NCBI RefSeq assembly: GCF_902713615.1
Contig: NC_052161.1
Span: 86,716,236-86,780,235 of the forward strand
Source of the DNA: Scyliorhinus canicula
Taxonomy: Eukaryota
Length of the DNA stretch: 64,000 nucleotides
Reading direction: 5' to 3'
The notes below the pieces were generated by a model that was given only the letters and a program-made list of their open reading frames with translations, was not told the DNA's origin and ran no database searches. Below, one piece after another: positions 14,131-56,633 of this stretch. The position numbers and the translations under genes are program-made. How positions within the stretch are numbered: position 1 is the stretch's first letter; each line of letters starts with the position of its first letter.

Positions 14131-16258
14131 TCAAAATTCCCAGAGGGCTGAGGAACTAGGACCTACCGAGGTGTGAAATGCTCCCCAATTTGTGGCTGGG
14201 GCGACTGCACCCCACTCCTCAGCGGTGGTTGCTAAGGGTATGAGGCCTAAACCAGGCTTCGAAGCCGGCCTTTGGTCACGGATGTTACCACAATTCAATT
14301 GCCGGCGGTTGTCTCATTTTTCGAACTTCTCAAACGCAGTAAATCATTTCTTGAACAATAAAGATGGTTTCTTGCTTTTAATTACTTCTGGTCCCTTTTT
14401 CGTCTGCATTTGTTTCAGTTCTCTGGCCAGCCTGTTGCTAATGAGCAGTGTTCAAAGAGTTGGAATGTGGCCTCCTCCTGTTCCTTGTGTGATGGGTTAG
14501 GGTCCCAACTTCTGGGTTAAGAGATTGGGAAATGGCAGAGTGGGCCACGGGGTTGAAGGGTCAGGCGTTAGCACTAAGGGTTCTAGGTTTGGGCTGGTAG
14601 CTGCAGGACTCAGGTTAAATTGGTTTCCTCCAGCCCCCTACACCCTTCCTGAGATACCCTCAATTATGACACAGGAGAGAAGATCGGTAATTCAAAGGCT
14701 TTAATCATCAGAGAACTGAACAGCAGCCGAGAAGTGTGCTCACCACATGCTGCCGAGTGAGCTGCATCTTATATACTGTTTCCTGGGGGAGGAGCCAGAG
14801 GCGGAGTCCCCCAGGGTTCCAAGTCCGGTCTTAAAGGGCCAATGTATTAAAGGTAAGGTACAGTTACAGCAGCTACTGATACCATTCAACACATTCATCC
14901 CCTGTTTAAAAAAAACACATAGTCCGTCATGGATGAAGTGGAGTTATAAGTTCAGTCTTGTGGGTGGTTTGACCGTTTGTGCTGACTTTCTCCGCTCCGG
15001 TGGTGGTGCCGTGGATACGGTCGGTTTCGATGGTGGGAAATCCGGGAGCACGGTTGACTGAGCCTTTGCCCGCCTTAGAGCGGGGGGGTGGTATCTGGGG
15101 TGACTAGGGTGATTGGTGCCAGCGCCGGCTGGGGGGCAGGGGGAGCTATGGGGGGGGGCGCTCTTGGGGGCGACAGTCGGTGCGGGGAAGGGAGCGTCAG
15201 TAGGAGGGGGGGGGTCGGTGGGGAAGCCGGCGGGATCGGTGGGAGAGCCAGCGGGTGCCAGATCTCACAGGGAGACGGTATCCTGCCTGCCATCAGGGTG
15301 CTCGACGTAGGCGTATTGAAGGTTCGCGTGTAGTTGGACCCCCTCGACTATGGGATCCGTTTTATGGCTCCTCACGTGTCTCCGGAGTAGGACTGGTCCC
15401 GGAGTCGTCAGCCAACGTGGAAGCTAAACCCCAGAGGTGGACTTCCTGGGGAAGACAAACAAACGATTGTGAGGGGTCTCGTTCGTGGCCGTACAGAGGA
15501 GCGACCTAATGGAATGTAGGGCATCGGGTAGGACCTCCTGCCAGGGGGCGATTGGGAGACTCCTTGACCGTAGGGCTAGAAGAACAACCTTCCAAACTTT
15601 CGCGTTCTCTCTCTCCACCTGCCCGTTTCCCCGTGGGTTATAGCTCGTCGTTCTGCTCGAGGCGATGCCCTTGCTGAGCAGGTACCGACGCAGCTCATCG
15701 CTCATGAACGATGTACCCCGGTCGCTGTGGATATAAGCGGGGAAACCAAACAGTGTGAAGATGCTGTGCAGTGCCTTGATTACGGAGGCCGAGGTCATAT
15801 CAGGGCAGGGTCCCTTTGAAGTCCACACTTAGTCGCTCAAAGGGCCCAGAGGCCTTTATCAGGCGGGCCCTGTCTGGTCGAAAGAATTGCGGTTTGCATT
15901 CCGCACAGATCTGGCATGCCTTAGTCATGGCCTTGACCTCCTCTGTGGAGTAGGGTAGGTTGCGGGACTTGATGAAGTGGGCAAGCCGGGTGACCCCTGG
16001 GTGGCAGAGGGCATCGTGGATGGCTCTCAGCCGGACCTTTTGCGCGTTGGCGCACGTGCCGCGGGACAGGGCATCCAGGGGCTCGTTGAGTTCCCCGGGC
16101 GATATTTAATATCGTACATATAGGTGGAGAGCTCTATCCTCCACCTCAGAATTTTGTCATTCTTTATTTTGCCCCGTTGTGCGTTATCGAACATAAAGGC
16201 GACTGACCGTTGGTCGGTGACGAGGGTGAACCTCCTACCGGCTAGGTAATGCCTCCAG

Positions 16259-17919
16259 AAGAACATAAGAACATAAGAACTAGGAGCAGGAGTAGGCCAT
16301 CTGGCCCCTCGAGCCTGCTCCGCCATTCAATTAGATCATGGCTGATCTTTTGTGGACTCAACTCCACTTTCCGGCCCGAACACCATAACCCTTAATCCCT
16401 TTATTCTTCAAAAAACTATCTATCTTTACCTTAAAAACATGTAATGAAGGAGCCTCAACTGCTTCACTGGGCAAGGAATTCCATAGATTCACAACCCTTT
16501 GGGTGAAGAAGTTCCTCCTAAACTCAGTCCTAAATCTACTTCCCCTTATTTTGAGGCTATGTCCCCTAGTTCTGCTGTCACCCGTCAGTGGAAACAACCT
16601 GCCCGCATCTATCCTATCTATTCCCTTCATAATTTTAAATGTTTCTATAAGTCCCCCCTCATCCTTCTAAATTCCAACGAGTACAGTCCCAGTCTACTCA
16701 ACCTCTCCTCATAATCCAACCCCTTCAACTCTGGGATTAACCTAGTGAATCTCCTCTTCACACCCTCCAGTGCCAGTACGTCCTTTCTCAAGTAAGGAGA
16801 CCAAAACTGAACACAATACTCCAGGTGTGGCCGCACTAACACCTTATACAATTGCAACATAACCTCCCTAGTCTTAAACTCCATCCCTCTAGCAATGAAG
16901 GACAAAATTCCATTTGCCTTCTTAATTACCTGTTGCACCTGTAAACCAACTTTCTGTGACTCATGCACTAGCACACCCAGGTCTCTCTGCACAGCAGCAT
17001 GCTTTAATATTTTATCGTTTAAATAATAATCCTGTTTGCTGTTGTTCCTACCAAAATGGATAACCTCACATTTCTCAACATTGTATTGCATCTGCCAGAC
17101 CCTAGCCCATTCACTTAACCTATCCAAATCCCTCTTCCAGTATCCTCTGCACTTTTCGCTTTACCACTCATCTTAGTGTCATCTGCAAACTTGGACACAT
17201 TGCCCTTGGTCCCCAACTCCAAATCATCTATGTAAATTGTGAACAATTGTGGGCCCAACACGGATCCCTGAGGGACACCACTAGCTACTGATTGCCAACC
17301 AGAGAAACACCCATTTATCCCAACTCTTTGCTTTCTATTAATTAACCAATCCTCTATCCATGCTACTACTTTACCCTTAATGCCATGCATCTTTATCTTA
17401 TGCAGCAACCTTTTGTGTGGCACCTTGTCAAAGGCTTTCTGGAAATCCAGATATACCACATCCATCGGCTCCCCGTTATCTACTGCACTGGTAATGTCCT
17501 CAAAAAATTCCACTAAATTAGTTAGGCATGACCTGCCTTTAACGAACCCATGCTGCGTCTGCCCAATGGGACAATTTCTATCCAGATGCCTCGCAATTTC
17601 TTCCTTGATGATAGATTCCAGCATCTTCCCTATTACCGGAGTTAAACTCACTGGCCTATAATTTCCTGCTTTCTGCCTACCTCCTTTTTTAAACAGTGGC
17701 GTCACGTTTGCTAATTTCCAATCCACCGGGACCACCCCAGAGTCTAGTGAATTTCGGTAAATTATCACTAGTGCATCTGCAATTTCCCTAGCCATCTCTT
17801 TTAGCACTCTGGGATGCATTCCATCAGGGCCAGGAGACCTGTCTACCTTTAGCCCCATTAGCTTGCCCATCACTACCTCCTGAGTGATAACAATCCTCTC
17901 ATGGTCCTCACCTGTCAAA
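16259..17919 (-). mobile_element. 5'-truncated CR1 LINE inserted in Gypsy D RNase H
   Basis: RT motifs [14 protein letters not shown], (TTCTTATG)n tail, 8-bp TSD GCCTCCAG at 16251-16258 and 17920-17927. Confidence 0.95.
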
Positions 17920-18744
17920 GCCTCCAGTGCCGCACAGCCTCCACTATGGCTTGTGCCTCCTTCTTGACTGCAGAGTGCCGAATTTCCGAGGCGGTGAGGG
18001 TTCGGGAGAAGAACGCTACCAGTCTGCCCGCCTGGTTGAGGGTGGCAGCCAGGGCGACGTCTGATACGTCGCTTTCTACCTGGAAGGGAATGGCTTAGTC
18101 CACCGCGTGCATGGCGGCCTTGATGATGCCGGCCTTGATACGGCTGAAAGCCGACTGGGCCTCAGCCGTCAGGGGAAAAGCCGTGGTCTGAATGAGTGGT
18201 TGGGCTTTGTCCGCATATCTGGGGACCCACTGGGCGTAATAGGAGAAAAGCCCCAAGCACCGTTTGAGTGCCTTGAGGCTACGGGGGAGGGGGAGTTCCT
18301 TAAGTGGACGCCTGCGGTCGGGGTCTGGGCCTAGGACCCCGTTCTCCACGACGTAGCCGAGGATGGCTTGCCGGGCTGTGTGGAACACGCATTTCTGTTT
18401 GTTGTACGTCAGGTTGAGGGCCCGGGCAGTCTGGAGAAACTTCCTCAGGTTTGCGTCATGGTCCTGCTGGCCATGGCCACAGATGGTGACGTTGTCCAAG
18501 TACGGGAAGGTAGCCCGTAAGCCGTACTGGTCCACCATTTGATCCATCGCCCTCTGGAAAATGGAGACTCCATTTGTGACACCAAAAGGGACCCTGAGGA
18601 AGTGAAACAGCCGACGGGCTGCTTCGAAAGCCGTGTAGGGGCAGTCCTCTGGGCGGATAGGGAGTTGATGATAGGCCGATTTAAGGTCGACCGTGGAGAT
18701 TACCCGATACTGGGTGATTTGAGTCACCATTTCTGCTATGCGGG

Positions 18745-21700
18745 TGTGGTGAATGTAACTTGGTAATTCACTCTGTATTTACCAATACTATTGTAAGCGC
18801 AGTATCGTTATCCGATCACTAGGGGGAGTAGCTCTGAGAATGCTCAGGAGTTTGTACAGGGCTCCACCCTTGGCTCCGCCCACGACTCCTCCCCCTAGAC
18901 TTCTGTATAAATAACCGTTTCCAGAGCCAGCCTGAGTTCATCGTGAGTTCAACGGGTAACAGGCTGGCTCTGAAGTAAGTAGATTAATACCACTGTTCAT
19001 ATCTGAAAGCATGTGTCTCGTGAATTGATGGTTCCATCAATTTAATCTACTTAAGAACAGTCAGGATCGATCATGGAATCAGCCCTCAAGCCTGGACGCC
19101 TGGAACCCACAGGATGCAGAGGCAAAATAAATCTTCTCCCACTGGCTGCGGTGTTTTAAGGCCTACCTGGCAGAAGCGAGCACAGCCGAAACAACTGAGG
19201 AACAGAAGTTAAGTCTACTGCACGCGAGGGTGAGCCACAGAATCTCTACGCAAATAAACTCTGCCGGTTCATATACTGCAGCGCTAGCGATACTCGATAA
19301 GATGTATGTAAGGCCCAGTAATGAAGTTTACGCACGCCAGGTGTTCACGACTCGCCGCCAGCGGCCTACAGAATCACTCGTCGAATTTCTAAGAGAGCTC
19401 AATAATTTATCAAATGACTGCAACTATCAAGCGGTTACATAGGGAACTTGCTGTACGCGACGTTATTGTAGTGGGCCTCAGGTCTAACTATGTGCGCCAA
19501 AGACTGCTGGAAAAGGGGGCCCAAGACTTAGAAACAACTGCGGAAATTGCTACCACGATGGAGGTCTCTTTCCGCAGCCTCACCTCGTTCCCCGCGGACC
19601 CCACGACCCAATCATGGGCCCCCGACCAGCAACTCCCCCAGGCCTGTGCCACGCGGCCTCCCAGCCACCATGCTGCCCCAGCCAGCCACTATGCTGCCAC
19701 AGCCTGCCATTTCTGCGGCCAGAATCAGCACCCGTGGCAGCACTGCCCGGCCCGCAATGCGACCTGCAGCAGCTGCGGGCGGAAAGGCCATTACGCAAGA
19801 GTGTGCCTCGCAAATAGGGCCCCAGCTTCCAACTCCCCAGCGGCACGAAGTAATCGCTCCCCACACTGGCAGGCCGCGGGGCCCGAAACGCTGCGGCCTA
19901 TGCCCCGACCCCGCCCCCTCCTGCCACGTGCGATCCATGGGGGCCGCCATCTTGGAAAACCTCCACCATGCGGCTGGCCACGTGTGACTCATGGGGGCCG
20001 CCATCTTGGACGCCATCTTCCTCGCCGCCCGCCACGTGCGATCCACGGGTCTGACCTGCATCTCCATGCTCGGACAACTCATCGGAAGAGTACGAATACG
20101 AACTGAGAGGTCAGTCATCACGGGGCCACTCCAGCACAGCTGATCGAGCCGCCGACTACCCGCAACTCAGCGCAGTCACCCTGGACCAATCGCGCCTGAA
20201 GCATCTGCGAAACTCGATGGCGATGGTCCAAATCAACGGGTACAGCACGCCATGCCTTTTCGACTCCGGGGGTACTGAGAGCTTCATACACCCAGATCTG
20301 GTAAGACGCTGTTCGCTCCCCGTTTTCCCCGTGCGGCAAACTATCTCTCTCGCTTCAGGCTCCCACTCTGTCCAGATCCAGGGGTGCACCGCCGCGACAC
20401 TCACAATCCGAGGCGCTAGCTATGCAAAATGTCAACTCTACGTTTTGCCCGAACTCTGCGCCCCACTCTTATTTGGCCTAGATTTTCAATGTAACCTTAA
20501 GAGCCTCACCCTCAGCTTCGGCGGGCCCCTGCCCCCACTCACTATCTGCAGCCTCGCTACGCTGCGAATCTCCCCCCCCCCTCCACTCTTCGCCAATCTC
20601 ACAAAGGACTGCAAACCCGTAGCCACTCGTAGCAGGCGATACAGCCTGCAGGATAGGGTATTTATCAGATCGGAGGTCCGAAGGCTTCTCAGTGAGGGGA
20701 TTATAGAGGCCAGCAATAGTCCCTGGAGAGCTCAGGTTGTGGTCGTTAAGACGGGGGAAAAATTCCGCATGGTTGTCGACTATAGTCAAACCATAAATAG
20801 ATTTACGCTCCTCGACGCGTATCCCCTCCCCAGGATTGCAGATGTGGTAAATCAGATCACCCAGTACCGGCTCTTCTCCACGGTGGATCTGAAGTCTGCA
20901 TACCACCAGCTCCCAATCCGCCCGGAGGACCGCCACTATACGGCATTCGAGGCCGATGGCCGCCTCTTCCATTTCCTCCGGGTCCCCTTCGGCGTCACTA
21001 ATGGGGTCTCGGTGTTCTAACGAGCAATGGACCGAATGGTGGACCAGTACGGGCTGCGGGCCACGTTTCCGTACTTGGACAATGTCACCATCTGCAGCTA
21101 TGACCAGCAGGACCACGACGCCAACCTCCACCGTTTTCTCCAGACGGCACAGAAACTGAATCTCACGTACAACAAGGAGAAATGCGTTTTCCGCACAACC
21201 AGATTAGCCATCCTCGGCTATGTCGTGGAAAACGGAGTCCTGGGCCCCGACCCGGACCGTATGCGCCCCCTCTTAGAACTCCCTCTCCCTCATTGCCCCA
21301 AGGCCCTCAAACGGTGCTTGGGCTTCTTCTCCTACTACGCCCAGTGGGTCCCTCAATATGCGGACAAAGCCCGTCCACTCTTTAAGGCCACACGATTTCC
21401 CCTGTCAGCTGAGGCACGACAGGCCTTCAACTACATCAAGGAGGACATCGCCAAAGCGGCCACGCGGGCGGTGGATGAATCCACTCCATTCCAGATTGAG
21501 AGCGACGCCTCAGAGGTAGCTCTAGCAGCCACACTAAATCAGGCAGGGAGACCAGTCGCATTTTTCTCCCAAACCCTCTCCGCTTCAGAACTCCGACACT
21601 CCTCAGTCGAGAAAGAAGCACAAGCCATTGTGGAGGCTGTTCGTCACTGGAGGCACTACCTCGCAGGTAGGAGGTTCACCCTCATCACCGACCAAAGATC

Positions 21701-35441: not shown

Positions 35442-35472
35442 TCAAGCGGTGTACTGTCCTCTGGGGCCCAGC
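35442..35472 (-). CDS. CD4: CD4 terminal coding exon (R)LGPRGQYTA*
   Basis: Acceptor attcttatcttttcag|G. Phase 2 matches the previous exon. TGA at 35442-35444. Confidence 0.65.
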
Positions 35473-40937: not shown

Positions 40938-41234
40938 TGAAATTGTTAAACCTTCACCTCCCACACACTATCCATATTGTTCCAGCAACTGGACCCTGTG
41001 AGTAATCGGTTTGCTCCTGAAGGCGTCCCCCAATCCCCCCTCCCATACAACACTCCTTAAAACCAAAACCATTGAATGATTTGTTAGTTGTCCCTCCTGA
41101 GAGAGGCCTGAGACAGCTGAGAGTCAAATTGGCTTTCCCGTTAGCACTCCGATTGGGCACTGCGCTGACTCAAAGATTGGCAAAAACCTGAAATATCTGA
41201 TAGCGCCGGCTCTCTGTCACCAGCTCCAACTCAC

Positions 41235-41360
41235 CGGTTCCCTTTCCCCTGTGAGGACCGGCCTCTCCGTGGCTGATGGGGGCAGTAACGAGGCAACGGC
41301 GGTAGCGGGCGTTCCGTGCTCGTGTAATCATTGCTGTTGCAAAGTGGCTGGTTCGAGAGT
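41235..41360 (-). CDS. CD4: CD4 cytoplasmic exon 2: LSNQPLCNSNDYTSTERPLPPLPRYCPHQPRRGRSSQGKGN
   Basis: Acceptor cccctctcag|, donor CG|gtgagt, phase 2/2. Contains the CxH motif. Confidence 0.85.
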
Positions 41361-41411
41361 CTGAGAGGGGAACATGAAACAAGTTAATAATTTGTTAAGT
41401 AACAACCCTCA

Positions 41412-42830
41412 ACACTGTCCCCATCAAACACTCCCAGGACAGGTACAGCACGGGGTTAGATACAGAGTAAAGCTCCCTCTACACTGTCCCCATCAAACAC
41501 TCCCAGGACAGGTACAGCACCGGGTTAGATACAGAGTAAAGCACCCTCTACACTGTCCCCATCAAACACTCCCAGAACAGGTAGAGCACTTGGTTAGATA
41601 CAGGGTAAAGCTCCCTCTACACTGACCCCATCAAACATTCCCAGGACAGGTAGAGCATGGGGTTAGATACAGAGTAAATCTCCCTCTACACAGTCCCCAT
41701 CAAACACTCCCAGGACAGGTACAGCACGGGGTTAGATACAGAGTAAATCTCCCTCTACACTGTCCCCATCAAACACTCCCAAGACAGGTACAGCACGGGG
41801 TTAGATACAGAGTAAAGCTCCCTCTACACTGTCCCCATCAAACACTCCCAGGACAGGTACAGCACGGGGTTAGATACAAAGTAAAGCTTCCTCTGCACTG
41901 TCCTCATCAAACACATCCCAGGACAGGAACAGCACAGGGTTAGATACAGAGTAAAGCTCCCTCTACACTGTCCCATCAGACACTCCCAGGACAGGTACAG
42001 CACGGGGTTAGATACAGAGTAAAGCTCCCTCTACACTGTCCCCATCAAACACTCCCAGGACAGGTACAACATGGGGTTAGATACAGAGTAAAGCTCCCTC
42101 TACACTGCCCCCATCAAACATTCCCAGGACAGGTACAGCACAGGGTTAGATACAGAGTAAATCTCCCTCTACACTGTCCCCATCAAACACTCCCAGAACA
42201 GGTACAGCACGGGGTTAGATACAGAGTAAAGCTCCCTCTACACTGTCCCCATCAAACACTCCCAGGACAGGTACTGCACGGGGTTAGATACAGAGTAAAG
42301 CTCCCTCTACTCTGTCCCCGTCAAACACTCCCAGGACAGGTACAGCACGGGGTTAGATACAGAGTAAAGCTCCCTCGACACTGTTCCATCAAACACCCCC
42401 AGGACAGCTACAGCACGGGGTTAGATACAGAGTACAGCTCCCTCTACACTGTCCCCATCAAACACTCCCAGGACAGGTACAGCACGGGGTTAGATACAGA
42501 GTAAAGCTCCCCCTACACTGTCCCCATCAAACACTCCCAGGACAGGTACAGCACGGGGTTAGATACAGAGAAAAGCTCCCCCTACACTGTCCCCATCAAA
42601 CACTCCCTGGACAGGTACAGCACGGGGTTAGATACAGAGTAAAGCTCCCTCTACACTGTCCCCATCAAACACTCCCAAGACAGGTACAGCACGGGGTTAG
42701 ATACAGAGTAAAGCTTCCTCTACACTGTCCCCATCAAACACTCCCAGGACAGGTACAGCACGGGGTTAGATACAGAGTAAAGCTCCCTCTATATTGTCCC
42801 CATCAAACACCCCCAGGACAGGTACAGCAT
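41412..42830 (+). repeat. 69-bp satellite block, forward orientation
   Basis: Unit cactgtccccatcaaacactcccaggacaggtacagcacggggttagatacagagtaaagctccctcta. Confidence 0.95.
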
Positions 42831-42907
42831 TTGGAATCAAGTTAAGTGTCTGGTTGGCAGGTTCTGGGTATGGAGGGGTATTTGAGAGATGTTTCAAGGT
42901 AACTCAC

Positions 42908-42960
42908 TGGTGACTGTGCTCCCGGCACAGAGGGTGTCTCAATCTCCTCAATGCTCGTCT
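42908..42960 (-). CDS. CD4: CD4 cytoplasmic exon 1: RRALRRLRHPLCREHSH(Q)
   Basis: Acceptor ttctttcctcacag|, donor CA|gtgagt, phase 0/2. Confidence 0.85.
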
Positions 42961-43335
42961 CTGTGAGGAAAGAACAGACATTCCGAGTTAGCAATGGAGT
43001 AAACATTTTGCAATGATGAGAGATTTAGGATGGAAGAGAGAGAGAGAGACGGAGACCGAGGGGCAGTGAGGCAGAAAAACAGAGAGAGAGAGAGGGGGAG
43101 AGAGAAAGAGAGAAGGGGAGAGAGTGAGAAAGACAGTGGGCGAGAGAGAGGGACAGGGCGAGAGAGAGGGACACAGCGAGAAAGAGAGAGCAAGATAGTG
43201 TGAGAGAAACAGGGAGAGAGAGAGAGAGAGACAGCCATAGAGAAACAGTCAGACAGGCAGCCAGGGAGAGTGAGAGACAATACCAAAGAGACAGAGGGAG
43301 TCACACAGCATGACGGGCAGAGGGAGAACGAGAGC

Positions 43336-43621: not shown

Positions 43622-44184
43622 AGAACGAGAGCCAAAGAGAGAGAGAAAGAAACAGGGGAAAGTGACAGAGAGAGAAAGGGACAGAGAGAAAGAGAGAGAG
43701 AGCGAGAGAGTGCGTCAGCAAGCAACAGAGAACATGACAGAGCGAAAGGGATGAGAGTGAGGGAGAGACAGAGAGAAACTCAGTGAGACAGAGCGACAGA
43801 CAGCAAGAGAGAGAGGAGAGAGAGAGACAGGAGTGGAGAGATTGAGAGTGATATGGAGATGTAGATGGAGAGACAGAGAGGGAGAGACAGAAAGGGGGAG
43901 ACAGAGAGAAAGACTGAGAGAGTGAGAGACAGGGATTTTGAGAGAGGTAGACAGAAACAGTGAGTGTGAGACAGATAGAGAGAGGGAGTGAGAGACAGAG
44001 AGTGAGAGGGAGTGACGGAGAGATGAGAGTGAGGAAGGAGAGATGAGAGAGTGAGACAGCTAGATACAGAGAAAGAGGTTTTGGGAGGCAGTAATAGCTC
44101 TCGCTTGAGGGATGTTAGAATGGATCAGTGAATCAAAGAATGGGCATGGGAGCAATGGCCCAATCCTTGCCCTGGTACCCTTAC

Positions 44185-44312
44185 CCGCCTCCTGGCTCTC
44201 TTTGCCAGGCAGATGCCAATCAGCGTGAAGATGACAATCAGGAGGAGTAAAGAGGCTGATGTCCCGATCATCAGGATTAAATTGTCCTTCCCGAAGATAC
44301 TGACAACCGGCT
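44185..44312 (-). CDS. CD4: CD4 transmembrane exon: (E)PVVSIFGKDNLILMIGTSASLLLLIVIFTLIGICLAKRARRR
   Basis: Acceptor ttcctgttctgtgtag|, donor CGG|gtaagg, phase 1/0. Hydrophobic span, juxtamembrane Cys and basic stop-transfer cluster. Confidence 0.92.
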
Positions 44313-44369
44313 CTACACAGAACAGGAAAACGTCAAATAATTCCCAAAATCAGAGACACACTCGCATCT

Positions 44370-46005
44370 TACACCGTGCTATACCTGTCCTGGGAGTGTT
44401 TGATGGGGACAGTGTAGAGGGAGCTTTACTCTGTATCTAACCCCGTGCTGCACCTGTCCTGGGAGTGTTTGATGGGGACAGTGTAGAGGGAGCTTTACTC
44501 TGTATCTAACCCCGTGCTGTACCTGTCCTGGGAATGTTTGATGGGGACAGTGTAGAGGGACCTTTACTCTGTATCTAACCCTGTGCTGTACCTGTCCTGG
44601 GAGTGTTTGATGGGGATAGTGTAGAGGGAGCTTTACTCTGTATCTAACCCCGTGCTGTACCTGTCCTGGGAGTGTTTCATGGAGACAGTGTAGAGGGAGC
44701 TTTACTCTGTATCTAACCCCGTGCTGCACCTGTCCTGGGAGTGTTTGATGGGGACAGTGTAGAGGTAGCTTTAGTCTGTATCTAACCCCGTGCTGTACCT
44801 GTCCTGGGAGTGTTTGATGGGGAGAGTGTGGAGGGAGCTTTACTCTGTATCCAACCCCGTGCTGTACCTGTCCTGGGAGTGTTTGATGGGGACAGTGAAG
44901 AGGGAGCTTTTCTCTGTATCTAATCCTGTGCTGTACCTGTCCTGGGAGTGTTTGATGGGGACAGTGTAGAGGGAGCTTTACTCTGTATCTAACCCTGTGC
45001 TTTACCTGTCCTGGGAGTGTTTGATGGCGACAGTGTAGTGGGAGCTTTACTCTATATCTAACCCCGTGCTGTGCCTGTCCTGGGAGTGTTTGATGGGGAC
45101 AATGCAGAAGGAGCTTTACCCTGTATCTAACCCATACTGTACCTGTCCTGGGAGTGTTTGATGGGGACAGTGTAGAGGGAGCTTTACTCTGTATCTAACC
45201 CCGTGCTGTACCTGTCCTGTGAGTGTTTGATGGGGACAATGTAGAGGGAGCTTTCCTCTGTATCTAACCCCGTGCTGTACCTGTCCTGGAAGTGTTTGAT
45301 GGGGACAGTGCAGAGGGAGCTTTACTCTGTATCTAACCCCATGCTGTACCTGTCCTGGGAGTGTGTGATGGTGATAGTGTGGAGGCAGCTTTACTCTGTA
45401 TCTAACCCCGTGCTGTACCTGTCCTGGGAATCTTTGATGGGGACAGTGCAGAGGGTTCTTTACTCTGTATCTAATCCCGTGCTGTTCCTGTCCTGGGAGT
45501 GTTTGATGGGGACAGTGTAGAGGGAGCTTTACTCTGTATCTAACCCCGTGCTGTACTTGTCCTGTGAGTGTTTGATGGGGACAGTGTAGAGGGAGCTTTA
45601 CTCTGTATCTAACCCCGTGCTGTACCTGTCCTGGGAGTGTTTGATGGGGACAGTGCGGAGGGAGCTTTACTCTGTATCTAACCCCGTGCTGTACCTGTCC
45701 TGGGAGTGTTTGATGGGGGACAGTGTAGAGGGAGCTTTACTCTGTATCTAACCCCGTGCTGTACCTGTCCTGGGAGTGTTTGATGGGGACAGTGCAGAGG
45801 GAGCTTTACTCTGTATCTAATCCCGTGCTGTACCTGTCCTGGGAGTGTTTCATGGGGACAGTGTAGAGGGAGCTTTACTCTGTATCTAACCCCGTGCTGT
45901 ACATGTCCTGGGAGTGTTTGATGGGGAAAGTGTAGAGGGAGCTTTACTCTGTATCTAACCCCGTGCTGTACCTGTCCTGGGAGTGTTTCATGGGGACAGT
46001 GCAGA
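44370..46005 (-). repeat. 69-bp satellite block, inverted relative to 41412-42830
   Basis: Reverse complement of the same unit. Confidence 0.95.
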
Positions 46006-46028
46006 TGTAGTTTTGTTCTGTATCTTAC

Positions 46029-46286
46029 CTGTGACATTGAGGGTCAATGTTGCTGCTCCCAATCTGGCGTTGTTTTGAATGATTTCACAGGTCCATACTC
46101 CAGCTTCGTGCTTGGTGACCTTGATGAGGTTGATGGTGAGAGAATCCTTTCCTTGTGCAATCCCCCCTTTACTGGACATGTTGCTGTGTCTCCACTGAAT
46201 CTGGGTGGATGGGGAATGATGGGAGATCAGGCAACTGAGAGAGATGTTCGAACCAATGATGATCATTCCGGGCTCGCTGACACTCA
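46029..46286 (-). CDS. CD4: CD4 Ig domain D4 (C2-type): VSVSEPG..LSC..IQW..AGVWTCEI..LNVT
   Basis: Phase 1/1, ag/gt boundaries, WxC in place of YxC as typical of CD4/LAG-3 D2 and D4. Confidence 0.93.
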
Positions 46287-46731: not shown

Positions 46732-47550
46732 TCACTTTGTCACTCCTGCCAAACCATCTGAACAGGGATTCGCGGCTTTTTCATCGAGCTCGCCATTTTC
46801 TCTGCAAAATAACTTGCCGAACATTTGATAGCCGTACTCATCTGGTTTACCCTCTGCTCTCGTGAATTCCTCATCATACTCATGGCCTCCGTGGACCTCA
46901 GCTTGGTACTCATCATTCGAGTTGCTATCAACTGCACAGACTTCTTCTGTGAAGTACGACTTTGCATATGGAATTACATAGTCACGCTGGAGGCCGCCCA
47001 GTCCAAAGTCAGCTGCCAATTTTGTTGCAAACTTCTCTTTAACAGTCCATGCTGTGAAATTTTAGGAGGACTGAAGAAATTGAAGAACAAATCATTTGGT
47101 ATTGTTCCCGCAACCGTTTTGCGAGTACTCCTGCCCTGATGTTTTGTCTTTGTCTTAATAGATCGCAGAGTGACATTTCTTCCTTTCTTCCAGTCAATCT
47201 GGCATCCCGTGCAACCCGTGATTTCTGGTTCGTCAAAGAATTGAAGCTAATCAGGCCGCGATTCCATCTGGTATTCTTTCGGAATAACGTTATTGGTGAA
47301 ATACTCCTTTGGCTCAAAGTTAAACTCCGGAGTGAAGCTTCTTGGCTGTTCAAACTCTGAACATTTAATGTTTACATCTCGCAGATGCTTTAATGTGGGC
47401 ACATTGTGCTCCTGTATCATGCCACGGAGTATGTCCACATTCCTGAAGACTGGACCAAAAGTCTGGAATTTCATTTGGCTGCTGCATTTCTTCCTTCACT
47501 TTGTCATTGCATGTGTGGAGATTTACTTGTTTTCGATCAATGCAGTCCAT
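46732..47550 (-). pseudogene. Intronless NAP1 (nucleosome assembly protein)-like ORF, disrupted
   Basis: IPDFW, VFRNVD..MIQEH..LKHL, FNFEPKEYFTN, PEITGCTGCQIDWKKGRNVT, FFNFFSPP, LAADF..VIP..YFTEE. One stop (47247) and two frameshifts. ATG in good context at 47550. Confidence 0.9.
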
Positions 47551-52845: not shown

Positions 52846-53466
52846 ACACTCTCTGTCTCTCTCTCACACTCTCCGTCTTTCACACTCTCTCTCTCACTCT
52901 CTCCGTCTCTGTCACACTTTCNNNNNNNNNNNNNNNNNNNNNNNNNNNNNNNNNNNNNNNNNNNNNNNNNNNNNNNNNNNNNNNNNNNNNNNNNNNNNNN
53001 NNNNNNNNNNNNNNNNNNNNNNNNNNNNNNNNNNNNNNNNNNNNNNNNNNNNNNNNNNNNNCGTTTCTCTCACACTCTCTCTGTCTCTCTCTCTTCTCTC
53101 TCTCACACTCTCTCCGTCTCTCTCACACTCTCTCTGTCTCTCTCTCTGTCTCTCTCTCTCTCTCACACTCTCTCTCTCTGTCTCTCTCTCTGTCTCTCTC
53201 TCTCTCTTCTCTCTCTCACACTCTCTCCNNNNNNNNNNNNNNNNNNNNNNNNNNNNNNNNNNNNNNNNNNNNNNNNNNNNNNNNNNNNNNNNNNNNNNNN
53301 NNNNNNNNNNNNNNNNNNNNNNNNNNNNNNNNNNNNNNNNNNNNNNNNNNNNNNNNNNNNNNNNNNNNNNNNNNNNNNNNNNNNNNNNNNNNNNNNNNNN
53401 NNNNNNNNNNNNNNTCTCTCGCACTCTCTGTCCCTCTCTTTCCCAGTCCACCCTCCGCAGCCTCAC

Positions 53467-53799
53467 CTTGGATCACGGTGACACTCAGCTTGCGTGAGAT
53501 GTTCCTGTTTCGGAGGCCCAGTTGGCAGATGTAATCTCCCCCGTCTCCCAGCGTGTTGACTGTGAGGACCACAGACATGTTTATCTTATTCAGGAACCTT
53601 GGCGTTCGGACGCGGCTCTCCCAGGAGCTCCGCCACATCCAGCCGTTGGTGCTGACATTCATTGATACCAGCTCCCTGTCTCCTCGCAGCCAGGCCCCTC
53701 GCACGGGCCTGGTGCTGGGGAACTGGTTCAGGGTGCAGGGCAGTTGGGTACTGGAACCCTCCGGGACGCCGATCACACGCTCGACAGGATTGGTGAAGC
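53467..53799 (-). CDS. CD4: CD4 Ig domain D3 (V-type): GFTNPVERVIGVPEGSSTQLPC..GAW..DGGDYICQL..VTVIQ
   Basis: Acceptor tctctccgcag|, donor G|gtgagg, phase 1/1, canonical C-W-DxGxYxC. Confidence 0.93.
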
Positions 53800-54967
53800 C
53801 TGCGGAGAGACGGAGAGAGGGTTAGGGAGAAGATTTCAGTGCTGGTGTCTGTCAGAGAGAAAGAGAGAGTGTGAGGCAGAATCTTGGAGAATGTGTGTGT
53901 GTGTGTGTGTGAGAGTGTGTGTGTGTGTGTGGGTGAGTGTGTGTGTGTGAGAGAGTGTGCACGAGAGACTGTGTGAGAGAGAGAGAGTACACGTGAGAGA
54001 GAGTTTGTTTGAGTGTGTGTCAGAATGTGTATGAGAGAGTGTGTGTGAGCGAGAGCGTTTGTGGGTAAGAGAGTGTGTGAGAAAGATTGTGTGCGTGAGT
54101 GTGTGTGTGTGCGAGAGAGAGTGTGAGAAAGAGTGTGTGAGAATGTGCGAGAGGGCGTATGTGTGTGAGTGTATGAGAGAGAGTGTGCATGANNNNNNNN
54201 NNNNNNNNNNNNNNNNNNNNNNNNNNNNNNNNNNNNNNNNNNNNNNNNNNNNNNNNNNNNNNNNNNNNNNNNNNNNNNNNNNNNNNNNNNNNNNNNNNNN
54301 NNNNNNNNNNNNNNNNNNNNNNNNNNNNNNNNGAGAGTGTGTGCGCGGGTGAGAGTGTGTGCGCGGGTGAGAGTGTGTGTGCAGGTGAGAGAGTGTGTGC
54401 GCGGGTGAGAGTGTGTGCGCGGGTGAGAGTGTGTGCGCGGGTGAGAGTGTGTGTGCGGGTGAGAGAGTGTGCGCGGGTGAGAGTGTGTGCGCAGGTGAGA
54501 GAGTGTGTGCGCGGGTGAGAGTGTGTGCGCGGGTGAGAGAGTGTGTGCGCGGGTGAGAGTGTGTGTGCGGGTGAGAGTGTGTGCGCGGGTGAGAGTGTGT
54601 GCGCGGGTGAGAGTGTGTGCGCGGGTGAGAGTGTGTGTGCGGGTGAGAGAGTGTGTGCGGGTGAGAGAGTGTGTGTGCGGGTGAGAGAGTGTGTGCGCGG
54701 GTGAGAGTGTGTGTGCGGGTGAGAGAGTGTGCGCGGGTGAGAGTGTGTGCGCGGGTGAGAGTGTGTGCGCGGGTGAGAGAGTGTGTGCGCGGGTGAGAGA
54801 GTGTGCGCGGGTGAGAGTGTGTGCGCGGGTGAGAGTGTGTGCGCGGGTGAGAGTGTGTGCGCGAGTGAGAGTGTGTGCGCGGGTGAGAGTATGAGTGTGT
54901 GTGTGTGTGAGTGAGTCTGTGAGTGTGTGAGTGAGTGTGTGAGTGAGTCTGTGTGTGTGAGTGAGTC

Positions 54968-55153: not shown

Positions 55154-56411
55154 TGTGTGTGTGCTAGTGAGTCTGTGTGCGAGTGAGTCTGTGTGCGAGT
55201 GAGTCTGTGTGCGAGTGAGTCTGTGTGCGAGTGAGTCTGTGTGCGAGTGAGTCTGTGTGCGAGTGAGTCTGTGTGCGAGTGAGTCTGTGTGCGAGTGAGT
55301 CTGTGTGCGAGTGAGTCTGTGTGCGAGTGAGTCTGTGTGCGAGTGAGTCTGTGTGCGAGTGAGTCTGTGTGCGAGTGAGTCTGTGTGCGAGTCTGTGTGT
55401 GTGTGAGAGTCTGTGTGTGTGTGAGAGTCTGTGTGTGTGTGAGAGTCTGTGTGTGTGTGAGAGTCTCTGTGTGTGTGAGAGTCTCTGTGTGTGTGAGAGT
55501 CTCTGTGTGTGTGAGAGTCTGTGTGTGTGTGAGAGTCTGTGTGTGTGAGAGTCTGTGTGTGTGAGAGTCTGTGTGTGTGTGAGAGTCTGTGTGTGTGTGA
55601 GAGTCTCTGTGTGTGTGAGAGTCTCTGTGTNNNNNNNNNNNNNNNNNNNNNNNNNNNNNNNNNNNNNNNNNNNNNNNNNNNNNNNNNNNNNNNNNNNNNN
55701 NNNNNNNNNNNNNNNNNNNNNNNNNNNNNNNNNNNNNNNNNNNNNNNNNNNNNNNNNNNNNNNNNNNNNNNNNNNNNNNNNNNNNNNNNNNNNNNNNNNN
55801 NNNNNNNNNNNNNNNNNNNNNNNNNNNNNNNNNNNNNNNNNNNNNNNNNNNNNNNNNNNNNNNNNNNNNNNNNNNNNNNNNNNNNNGTGAGTCTGTGTGT
55901 GTGTGAGTCTGTGAGTGTGTGTGAGTCTGTGAGTGTCTGTGTGTGAGTCTGTGAGTGTCTGTGTGTGAGTCTGTGAGTGTCTGTGTGTGAGTCTGTGAGT
56001 GTGTATGTGACTGAGTGTGTGCGCGAGTGTAATAATAATAACAATAATAATCGCTTATTGTCACAAGTAGGCTTCAATGAATTTGCTGTGAAAACCCCTA
56101 GTCACCACATTCCAGTGCCTGTTTGGGGAGCCCAGTACGGGAATTGAACCTGCGCTGCTGGTATTGTTCTGCATTGCAAGCCAGATATTTAGCCCATGTG
56201 CTAAACCAGCCCCTGCCAACCAGTGTGTGAGTGAGCATGAGTGATTGTGTGTGTTTGAACGTGTTTAGTGTGTGAGTGAGTGAGAGTGTGTGAGAATGTG
56301 TGTGAGTGTGTATGTGACTGAGTGTGTGTGAGAATGAGTGTGTAAGTGTGAGTGTGAGTCTTTCTCACTGTTTCACATCGTCCAACCCAGACACTGTTCT
56401 GCTGAACCTAC

Positions 56412-56633
56412 CGATCACATCCAGGACGTAGCTGGTGTGTAGCGTCTCCTTGGCGAACTCCACATTACAGGTCCACTTTCCCGCATGGGACAGACTTATT
56501 GCATTGAGCATCACTGTGTTCTTGTCCCTCTGGGTATCTCCAGGACCGTTCCAGCTCACCTTTCCTGCTGGAGCATGGCAGGTCAGCTCTACATTGTCAC
56601 CCTCGAGCGATGGTTTCGAGGAGCTGGAAGTCA
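56412..56633 (-). CDS. CD4: CD4 Ig domain D2 (short C2-type): TSSSSKPSLEGDNVELTC..VSW..AGKWTCNV..VLDVI
   Basis: Acceptor cctcgtacag|, donor G|gtaggt, phase 1/1, WxC motif. Confidence 0.92.

Follow-up and report, generated by a model that had tools for sequence, protein, structure and literature searches.

The cytoplasmic tail of CD4 in the shark Scyliorhinus canicula contains an exact class I SH3 ligand, RPLPPLP, followed after only two residues by a CPH motif of the Cx(C/H) type. It is plausible, judging from these motifs, that the kinase LCK docks on this tail at two points, with a zinc clasp at CPH and with its SH3 domain on RPLPPLP; the fuller proposal, in which this double contact also favours the open form of LCK, is offered tentatively, as we give it somewhat less than an even chance. 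The same gene has been described from the same species assembly by Takizawa et al. 2023 (Front Immunol 14:1267743, PMC10768021), who already reported both the CxH motif and the additional exon, along with a conserved "proline-rich stretch" to which they assign no function, and who expect further interactions with LCK or other molecules, so that the novelty is limited to the SH3 reading. An earlier, sequence-only reading of this DNA had guessed correctly that shark CD4 and an additional conserved tail motif were on record. The main text of PMC10768021 makes no mention of SH3 or PxxP, and what is new here is the exact class I SH3 ligand reading, RNA support from S. canicula, two added species (Mustelus asterias and Heterodontus francisci) and a comparison of identity between tail and ectodomain.

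The window, i.e. the whole stretch of 64,000 nucleotides that was analysed, carries on its minus strand a part of CD4 from S. canicula; once spliced, the encoded product is identical to XP_038629127 in 235 of 235 residues. The assignment of the segment 41235-42960 to a shark CD4 tail by the sequence-only reading is confirmed by its identity with the S. canicula CD4 of Takizawa et al. 2023 (PMC10768021), whose supplement 3 shows the same tail down to HSHQ. The minus-strand frame translations show the peptides ...LSNQPLCNSNDYTSTERPLPPLPRYCPHQPRRGRSSQGKGNR and ...RRALRRLRHPLCREHSHQ, and the borders of that segment coincide exactly with the outer ends of the two exons, C1 beginning at 42960 and C2 finishing at 41235; the last coding exon, C3, lies outside it and is required for the full tail of 75 aa. 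The features are as follows:

56412..56633, minus strand: Ig-like D2 exon, C2-type; D1 and leader are past the end of the window
53467..53799, minus strand: Ig-like D3 exon, V-type; query for the search of representative proteins
46029..46286, minus strand: Ig-like D4 exon, C2-type; Pfam Ig matches on the corresponding part of P0055 and P0054
44185..44312, minus strand: transmembrane exon; ends with KRARRR, phase 0
42908..42960, minus strand: cytoplasmic exon C1, encoding RRALRRLRHPLCREHSH(Q); phase 0 start, phase 2 end; acceptor cag, donor GTGAGT
42916..42927, minus strand: CREH, second Cys/His dyad (CxxH), within the invariant RLRHPLCREHS
41406..42829, no strand assigned: 69-bp satellite array of 20.7 copies; occupies most of the C1-C2 intron, non-coding, skipped by the RNA contigs
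41235..41360, minus strand: cytoplasmic exon C2, encoding (Q)LSNQPLCNSNDYTSTERPLPPLPRYCPHQPRRGRSSQGKGN(R); phase 2 in and out; acceptor cag, donor GTGAGT; defined by splice sites, RNA contigs of four runs and identity to XP_038629127; shark-specific extra exon region
41291..41311, minus strand: RPLPPLP, exact class I SH3 heptamer; tail residues 41-47, 40 residues past the membrane anchor
41276..41284, minus strand: CPH, Cx(C/H) motif, separated from RPLPPLP by the two-residue spacer RY; basic flanks; presumed zinc clasp according to PMC10768021
35442..35472, minus strand: last coding exon C3, encoding (R)LGPRGQYTA; coding 35472..35445, TGA stop 35444..35442

The D2, D3, D4 and transmembrane exons share one open spliced frame in the window, with D1 outside it, in line with the type I architecture of CD4, in which Ig-like domains in the order V-C2-V-C2 precede a single transmembrane segment, and the end of the transmembrane exon is followed by C1, C2 and C3 in phases 0, 2 and 2. 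The tail is thus encoded by multiple exons, including one extra shark tail exon, as is characteristic of CD4, whereas the tail of LAG-3 is a single exon (PMC10768021). In S. canicula, CD4 lies directly downstream of LAG-3, head to tail, on chromosome 16, and the published CD4 gene spans 48.3 kb (PMC10768021). In four runs, catalogued under four studies, transcript contigs cover positions 41234-41360 without a difference; their ends behind 41360 read into C1 and those before 41234 correspond to the reverse complement of C3, in which the runs differ by one synonymous change (ACC/ACT). Since the contigs join C1, C2 and C3, the RNA evidence confirms both frame and splicing. The TGA that follows GKGNR was rejected as a stop codon, as it belongs to the splice donor CG|GTGAGT. 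Another reading frame in cDNA had been named as an outcome fatal to the sequence-only reading; both the RNA contigs and the cDNA of the sister species S. torazame agree with the frame given here. The same tail is carried by S. torazame CD4 (cDNA LC770928, machine-read from PMC10768021) and by the full-length S. torazame orthologue P0054, which is identical in 333 of 380 aligned residues and shows V-set, C2-set and Ig matches along its length. CD4 expression is high in the thymus of S. torazame and of nurse shark (PMC10768021).

Derivation of C2 from the intronic 69-bp satellite was also considered, in view of a 19/25 match around CCCCATCA. The local alignment score of C2 against the satellite is 13, as compared to 8.1 +/- 1.3 for shuffles, 0.6% of which reach 13; this match was treated as a chance one, because the comparison was made post hoc and because the age of the exon far exceeds what is likely for a species-level satellite.

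A search with the D3 exon against 1.84 billion representative proteins returned four shark CD4-like proteins and nothing else, and word-index protein searches added one further shark CD4-like protein; neither kind of search reached a CD4 from batoids, squalomorphs or chimaeras. The representative of a 90% cluster may be a tailless model, as in the case of P0001, which hides P0055 and P0056. S. canicula itself has near-identical copies, XP_038677195 (337/342) and XP_038629566, in which splicing links the transmembrane exon out of frame with the final exon. Several shark proteins of the CD4 family are misnamed in the databases, e.g. as LAG-3-like.

Counted with the KRARRR of the transmembrane exon, the 75-aa tail has three Tyr, nine Pro, three Cys and four His, and its sole Cx[CH] motif lies in RYCPHQPRRGR, where it has basic residues on both sides. 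No (F/Y)xxL(D/E) motif of the LAG-3 type turned up when this tail and those of four orthologues were scanned with a regular expression. In these points the sequence-only reading had the inventory right, from the length and the three Tyr to CREH, the RPLPPLP-RY-CPH series and the missing LAG-3 signature, and its description of RPLPPLP as the optimal class I SH3 ligand agrees with two papers that name it the canonical or consensus class I motif. In shuffles of the tail, the loose core [RK]xxPxxP occurs in 22% of cases and the exact RPLPPLP in 3.5e-5; the loose core being so common, the weight of the argument rests on the exact match and its conservation.

Several other candidate signals were dropped. 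Nedd4-type WW-domain sites (PPxY/LPxY) were discarded because LPRY is confined to catsharks and Mustelus, and a second class I match (RYCPHQP) as well as the class II matches PHQPRR, PPPPVR and PYCPHR because they are not conserved; the motif scan of the tail found neither YxxPhi nor acidic dileucine sorting signals. Pfam hmmscan of P0054, P0055 and P0002 at E<=1 gave Ig-type families and weak unrelated membrane or tail matches, and no tail family, while a PDB sequence search with the tail found no relative, only a chance match with an E-value of 0.22. AlphaFold2, run with the shark alignment described below (A1), predicted no secondary structure after segment residue 37, with pLDDT of about 45-56 for residues 38-86. 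By topology RPLPPLP is cytoplasmic, and this low-confidence model lends weak support to its placement in an exposed, unstructured segment.

Alignment A1 comprises both copies from S. canicula and the sequences from S. torazame, Mustelus asterias, Heterodontus francisci and Ginglymostoma cirratum. These five shark species belong to three orders, and all of them keep RPLPP(L/P)P, with six of the seven positions of the heptamer fixed; it starts at tail residue 41, at a fixed distance from the membrane, and is followed two to three residues on by CPH, which is invariant in all five species, as is CREH. The invariant columns are R-P-L-P-P-x-P, Y-C-P-H and 46 others. Identity in the tail core amounts to 76-84%, as against 33-41% in the ectodomain; since the whole core of 50 aa (e.g. 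RLRHPLCREHS) is equally conserved, this conservation does not single out the heptamer. The reliable sequences are all from galeomorph sharks, i.e. from one superorder. Outside them, we used the supplements of PMC10768021, machine-read with loss of letters, only where a database sequence was absent; for nurse shark they give PPPIPY or PPPIIPY, in contrast to PPPPIPY in P0053. In the machine-read alignment of the same paper, the text of which is unreliable, electric ray has RPLRPPP and rabbitfish RPLETPP, both without RxxPxxP, whereas elephant shark has RPLPTPP, with RxxPxxP. Conservation of the motif, on which the sequence-only reading had made its case depend, is thus upheld for the five sharks, but ray and rabbitfish seem to break RxxPxxP, as far as the machine-read alignment can be trusted.

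Related motifs are found in teleost CD4-2. In otophysan CD4-2-like tails, (E/D)RPLPP(V/I)P(R/K)HQY is present in Metynnis (P0044) and in the first unit of Salminus (P0014), while RPPPLPR(Y/H)QY follows NYC(Q/K)C in the second unit of Salminus and in channel catfish CD4-2 (PMC10768021 supplement); trout and fugu CD4-2 have merely loose Pro/Arg-rich ends. The otophysan proline motif stands after CxC or occurs without it, close to the C-terminus, whereas the shark motif precedes CPH, and the MAFFT alignment of the shark and teleost tails is too short and gappy for a call of homology. It is only as an improbable, more speculative extension that we mention an SH3 ligand beside the LCK zinc dyad as an old trait of the fish CD4 family, shared by sharks and otophysan CD4-2-type proteins and lost in tetrapods. 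On this view, the joint grip of shark CD4 on the SH3 and unique domains would hold LCK open, and the invariant CREH dyad of C1 might be a second zinc site.

According to the two-point proposal, CPH and the CxxC of the LCK unique domain would be joined in a zinc clasp, an idea put forward by Takizawa et al. (PMC10768021), who cite zinc-dependent LCK binding of the CxH of trout CD8alpha. RPLPPLP would provide a polyproline-II docking site for a Src-family SH3 domain, most likely that of the same LCK molecule, and the flexible stretch of the LCK unique domain that links CxxC to SH3 would loop back. The resulting high local concentration could turn a weak SH3 contact into a near-constant one, and CD4 would be more fully occupied by LCK than CD8. 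The closed form of LCK is aided by binding of SH3 to the linker (PMC8005572), and competition with this contact would bias the coreceptor-bound LCK towards the open form. The LCK SH3 domain binds proline motifs of PI3K p85, and LCK binds the RK motif of CD3epsilon (PMC8005572). The tails of shark CD8alpha and CD8beta have CxH with basic flanks and no PxxP, hence the clasp probably suffices for LCK binding and, to judge by CD8alpha, LCK docking seems not to need the SH3 ligand. In the literature searched we found no LCK-binding measurement for any shark CD4.

In mammals, the clasp is made between CxC of CD4 and CxxC of LCK (Kim et al. 2003, as cited in PMC10768021 and PMC8005572). Mammalian and shark CD4 are alike in having, close to the end of the tail, a dyad that includes Cys and is expected to share one zinc with LCK, and a basic, helix-prone juxtamembrane segment before it. 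They differ in the dyad itself (CPH in shark, CQC in mammals) and in the segment that precedes it, which is polyproline in shark and an LCK-packing amphipathic helix in human CD4; the shark helix is much further from the dyad, and a class I SH3 motif is absent from mammalian CD4. The Tip protein of Herpesvirus saimiri makes two contacts with LCK, through SH3B and CSKH, each of which binds alone, only more weakly (PMC4619936). Tip resembles the proposed state of shark CD4 as a membrane-anchored tail with two short LCK motifs, of which one is an SH3 ligand. Tip is, however, a viral protein of unrelated sequence, and its second contact is the kinase domain of LCK and not the unique domain reached through zinc. 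The SH3 ligand of Tip is presumably of class II. Docking of the LCK SH3 domain on short motifs of receptor tails and signalling proteins is also represented by CD28, whose PYAP motif contacts it, by the CD3epsilon RK motif and by p85, but these motifs are non-canonical or weaker and none of them lies beside a zinc clasp on an MHC coreceptor.

The heptamer might instead be a proline-recognition site for a protein other than LCK, with CD4 recruiting a second partner beside the clasp-bound LCK; the candidates include a Src- or Tec-family kinase, an SH3 adaptor (Grb2/GADS, Nck, PI3K p85, CD2AP/CIN85-like) and a class II WW domain recognizing PPLP. We regard this as unlikely, but deserving serious attention: RPLPPLP is the generic Src-type class I consensus and is not specific for LCK, shark CD8alpha presumably docks LCK without such a motif, which suggests an extra partner specific for CD4, and PMC10768021 allows for 'other cytosolic signaling molecules'. 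Besides, as the characiform CD4-2-like tails have RPLPP(V/I)P and no CxC, the motif there cannot depend on an adjacent clasp. On the other hand, the presumed LCK clasp is only two to three residues away, so a bulky partner would have to share the space with LCK, which is already the one SH3 protein expected at this site, and the PPLP needed by a WW domain is not kept in Heterodontus and nurse shark (PPPP). It is rather unlikely, in our judgement, that the proline stretch is no SH3 ligand at all but a stiff spacer, or a fold or extended surface for the LCK unique domain, in which the Cys and His residues of HPLCREH (C1) and CPH (C2) may bind zinc inside the tail or hold two partners. Such a role would fit the conservation of more than 50 aa as one block, including H26, C29, H32, C61 and H63 (A1 numbering), the suggestion in PMC10768021 that conserved residues may 'help bind LCK', given that CxH is possibly weaker than CxC, and the apparent retention of RPL..PP, but not of RxxPxxP, in ray and rabbitfish; MAFFT also sets the teleost CD4-2 'NYCQC' against the shark 'CREHSHQ' rather than CPH, in an unreliable alignment. 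Yet AlphaFold2, which models no zinc, predicts no fold for segment residues 38-86, an exact R-P-L-P-P-x-P with its invariant Arg would be superfluous in a spacer, and the CxH of shark CD8alpha has no such support.

That the match is a functionless by-product of an Arg/Pro-rich composition appears very improbable. The frequency of the loose class I core among shuffles and the second, non-conserved match RYCPHQP in the same tail speak for it, but they are outweighed by the rarity of the exact heptamer and by its six positions kept through three shark orders, over which the ectodomain has diverged down to 33-41% identity. It is hardly credible that the copy in the window represents LAG-3, or a CD4 pseudogene fragment of the kind reported around the intact gene, despite the near-identical copies XP_038677195 and mis-spliced XP_038629566 and despite the LAG-3-like labels given to several such proteins. 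From D2 through to the terminal TGA the frame is uninterrupted and its splice sites are canonical, the copy is transcribed, the tail equals that of the published intact CD4 and, unlike in LAG-3, is multi-exon and free of (F/Y)xxL(D/E); moreover, the 5' end would lie about 18-20 kb past the window, consistent with the published gene span.

Among the known forms of the MHC class II coreceptor, that of sharks is the oldest; the unusual tail of shark CD4 was a reason for which Venkatesh et al. 2014, as quoted in PMC10768021, argued against calling the nurse shark sequence a bona fide CD4. The description of 2023 raised the question of the role of the strongly conserved stretch before CxH, and the SH3 reading makes this question testable at the bench. 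If two-point docking is true, early jawed vertebrates tied LCK to CD4 by a different route than mammals do, with two points of attachment, and shark CD4 would be a natural coreceptor able to recruit and also to open its own kinase, which may be of interest to designers of synthetic receptors. Were the SH3 ligand in addition an old trait of fish CD4, it would represent an alternative to the mammalian helix-plus-CxC clasp for providing CD4 with more, and more active, LCK than CD8.

The coding strand of the window is the minus strand, on which translation of 41380..41168 yields LSNQPLCNSNDYTSTERPLPPLPRYCPHQPRRGRSSQGKGNR and that of 42999..42880 yields RRALRRLRHPLCREHSHQ. The start and end positions of the sequence-only reading (42960 and 41235) are the exact outer borders of two adjacent cytoplasmic-tail exons, C1 and C2, and the seeming stop after GKGNR is the start of a splice donor (CG/GTGAGT). 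The last tail exon, C3, was found by a six-frame search, and the features of the locus are as follows.

42960..42908, minus strand: exon C1, preceded by ...cacag and followed by GTGAGT (canonical splice signals)
41360..41235, minus strand: exon C2, preceded by ...ctcag and followed by GTGAGT (canonical splice signals)
35472..35442, minus strand: exon C3, LGPRGQYTA plus TGA, behind a ...ttttcag acceptor
44312..44185, minus strand: transmembrane (TM) exon, upstream of C1, ending in KRARRR
46286..46029, 53799..53467 and 56633..56412, minus strand: three Ig-domain exons, upstream of the TM exon
2-361, 15427-15828, 17118-18161 and 18098-18778, minus strand: retroelement remains (Pfam), downstream of the CD4 stop

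Splicing at the exon borders gives a single open frame of 382 codons with one stop, at its end.

The 1.5-kb C1-C2 intron is nearly all 69-bp satellite (41406-42829, 20.7 copies), and a second array (44366-46029, 24.1 copies) occupies the D4-TM intron in the opposite orientation, so that the two, with 92-93% matches, flank the TM and C1 exons. The second array has no stop over 271 codons when read on the strand of the gene, and repeats ...LHCPHQTLPGQ.... A part of exon C2 coding for PRYCPHQP (41269-41293) shares 19 of 25 bases with the satellite unit (CCTC...ACTG.CCCCATCA..CAC); the local score of this post hoc comparison is 13, against 8.1 +/- 1.3 for dinucleotide shuffles, 0.6% of which reach it, and the match is probably due to chance. 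The TM-C1 intron contains long impure AG/GA microsatellites (43035-43231 and 43636-44077), and the D3-D4 intron a minus-strand ORF piece (47250-47495) assigned by Pfam to the nucleosome assembly protein family NAP (E 2e-16). Four N runs in the D2-D3 and D3-D4 introns (52922-53061, 53229-53414, 54193-54332, 55631-55886) stand among TH/SH-type simple repeats, one of them stopping ~50 bases from the D3 exon. Pfam identifies the retroelement pieces as endonuclease-reverse transcriptase (one), integrase core (one) and reverse transcriptase (two).

The object is the known, already published tail of catshark CD4. Takizawa et al. 2023 derived the S. canicula gene by hand from chromosome 16 (NC_052161, 86751677-86800007, reverse strand), a span of 48.3 kb, which places its 5' end ~19.8 kb past the window edge (PMC10768021), and the window product agrees with their protein, including the HSHQ residues and the terminal LGPRGQYTA (PMC10768021 supplement 3). 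The spliced product is also identical at 235 of 235 residues to S. canicula XP_038629127, whose database name, 'endothelial cell-selective adhesion molecule-like', is a misnomer; a name-based database search would miss the CD4 proteins P0055, P0001, P0054, P0053 and P0004. Of the features that separate CD4 from LAG-3, the Cx(C/H) between basic residues and the division of the tail among several exons are both present, and the window tail contains no LAG-3 motif (F/Y)xxL(D/E); the position beside LAG-3 and the thymus expression are taken from PMC10768021. That the window copy is LAG-3 or a pseudogene is thus extremely improbable. Outside the window, the S. canicula copy P0056 (XP_038677195) is identical to the window product at 337 of 342 residues and has an intact tail. 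In P0001 (XP_038629566) the last exon follows directly on the TM exon in a shifted frame, and the protein ends in AGPQRTVHCLNLGSSFVAN, which leaves it without CREH, RPLPPLP and CPH; the additional S. canicula copies are described as pseudogene fragments (PMC10768021).

The tail comprises 75 residues, including 19 Arg/Lys, 9 Pro, 3 Cys, 4 His and 3 Tyr. A basic juxtamembrane run is followed by HPLCREH, QPLCNSNDY and TSTE, then by the heptamer RPLPPLP (residues 41-47), RY, CPH (50-52), a basic Ser-containing stretch and the end GPRGQYTA. The anatomy given by the sequence-only reading was accurate, and its observation of an exact class I SH3-ligand motif just before a CxH motif is fully confirmed; RPLPPLP is the canonical or consensus class I motif in published work. 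The frame, which a cDNA in another frame would have overturned, is borne out by transcripts. Contigs from four runs (four studies, two organism labels) cover 41234-41360 with zero differences and depart from the genome exactly at the C2 borders. On one side they read into exon C1 (plus-strand sequence TGGTGACTGTGCTCCC...), and on the other into exon C3 including its stop, as CTGGGCCCCAGAGGACAGTACAC(C/T)GCTTGA in reverse complement. The run records give no RNA/DNA label, but since the contigs skip both introns their source can only be spliced RNA. Within exon C3 (35445-35472) the Thr codon of GQYTA occurs in two synonymous forms, ACC and ACT, each in two of the four runs. The same tail is found in S. 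torazame, both in cDNA LC770928 (PMC10768021, machine-read) and in the database protein P0054.

Three shark orders are represented among the reliable tails, which come from S. canicula (two copies), S. torazame, Mustelus asterias, Heterodontus francisci and Ginglymostoma cirratum, five species in all. Across these sharks R-P-L-P-P-x-P (x = L or P), Y-C-P-H and 46 other columns are invariant, with the heptamer starting at tail residue 41 in all and separated from the Cys by 2 or 3 residues. Between orders the tail core retains 76-84% identity, compared to 33-41% for the ectodomain, which makes the tail much more constrained than the MHC-binding part; judging from the alignment, this constraint spans the entire tail core, beyond the heptamer alone. 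In the machine-read alignment of PMC10768021, to be taken as leads and not as data, one chimaera, the elephant shark (RPLPTPP), keeps RxxPxxP, and the electric ray (RPLRPPP) and the other chimaera, the rabbitfish (RPLETPP), lack it; that text loses letters, giving nurse shark PPPIPY/PPPIIPY where the database protein has PPPPIPY. The M. asterias isoform X1 (P0057) has two additional residues, VK, at the TM/C1 junction (KRARRRVKRRALRR), probably from an alternative splice junction shifted by a few bases.

CD4 and CD8alpha bind LCK through one zinc ion, held jointly by the coreceptor CxC and by a CxxC in the LCK unique domain. The LCK SH3 domain helps the closed form by contacting the SH2-kinase linker, and it also binds the CD3epsilon RK motif and proline motifs in PI3K p85 (PMC8005572). 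LCK is also held by a pair of short motifs in the viral protein Tip, of which one is an SH3 ligand (PMC4619936). From this background we infer every step beyond the presence, expression and conservation of the motif: CPH would form a zinc clasp with LCK, and the heptamer, 2-3 residues upstream, would be bound as a polyproline-II helix by an SH3 domain. The closest such domain would be that of the clasped LCK itself, tethered by the flexible remainder of the unique domain (~40 residues in mammalian LCK; the shark length may differ), and such a tether would turn even a weak contact near-permanent, in competition with the autoinhibitory linker contact. The tail beyond PLCREHSHQLS, over which AlphaFold2 (shark alignment) predicts a weak second helix after the one across the membrane and the basic part, has no regular structure in this poor model (pLDDT ~45-56), which fits an exposed linear motif. 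Simultaneous engagement of one LCK by clasp and heptamer is quite possible, if short of an even chance.

The loose pattern [RK]xxPxxP arises in 22% of shuffles of the tail residues and has a second, non-conserved match in the same tail (RYCPHQP); the exact RPLPPLP arises in only 3.5e-5 of them, and we regard a motif of pure chance as very unlikely. A less likely but serious alternative to LCK is that the heptamer binds another SH3 or WW protein, which draws some support from characiform CD4-2-like tails that have RPLPP(V/I)P without any CxC. It is unlikely, if still conceivable, that the role is structural, as a stiff linker or as part of a larger zinc-dependent arrangement including the invariant HPLCREH, which would fit a tail conserved as one block, and one from which RxxPxxP has apparently been lost in ray and rabbitfish. 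Two Cys/His dyads, CREH (CxxH; 42916-42927, exon C1) and CPH (CxH; 41276-41284, exon C2), are invariant, as is His26; together they could contribute four zinc ligands from a single tail, or else engage two partners. MAFFT, in an unreliable alignment, sets teleost CD4-2 CQC against the C1 dyad and not against CPH.

A search with the D3 exon also returned teleost proteins with tails similar to the shark motif. Metynnis hypsauchen P0044 ends in ...KERPLPPVPRHQY...; in the fused model P0014 of Salminus brasiliensis the first unit reads ...DRPLPPIPKHQY... and the second NYCQCNRS...ERPPPLPRYQY, close to NYCKCDRP...GRPPPLPRHQY of channel catfish CD4-2 (PMC10768021 supplement 3). P0014 and P0008 (Brachyhypopomus gauderio) look like two tandem genes merged in one model. 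Otophysan CD4-2/CD4-2-like tails (P0044, P0014, P0008 and channel catfish) follow either (E/D)RPLPP(V/I)P(R/K)HQY with no CxC, or NYC(Q/K)C with RPPPLPR(Y/H)QY ~17-20 residues on. By sequence, both versions place a class I type SH3 motif in a different branch of the CD4 family; no description of it was found in the literature searched. Trout CD4-2 PLKSNDYCQC resembles shark QPLCNSNDY, which suggests that, in sharks, SNDY and the Cys dyad are separated by TSTERPLPPLPRY as an insert. On four or five short tails in a gappy alignment, the shark/teleost likeness may reflect shared ancestry or convergence.

As the sequence-only reading had anticipated, novelty is confined to the mechanism: for shark CD4, the gene, the CxH motif, a longer tail with an extra exon and a conserved proline-rich stretch are already reported (PMC10768021). 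Neither SH3 nor PxxP occurs in the main text of that paper, a literature search combining shark CD4 with LCK, SH3 or proline-rich yielded none that makes this connection, and a single-cell study of 2024 still regards function as open. The SH3 interpretation itself thus appears to be new; having come through the tests of reading frame and within-shark conservation, it is a reasonable hypothesis. Against it, the tails of shark CD8alpha and CD8beta carry CxH between basic residues without PxxP, so the clasp is probably enough by itself, with the proline motif a CD4-specific addition; this would fit either a gain of LCK on CD4 over CD8, or another partner.
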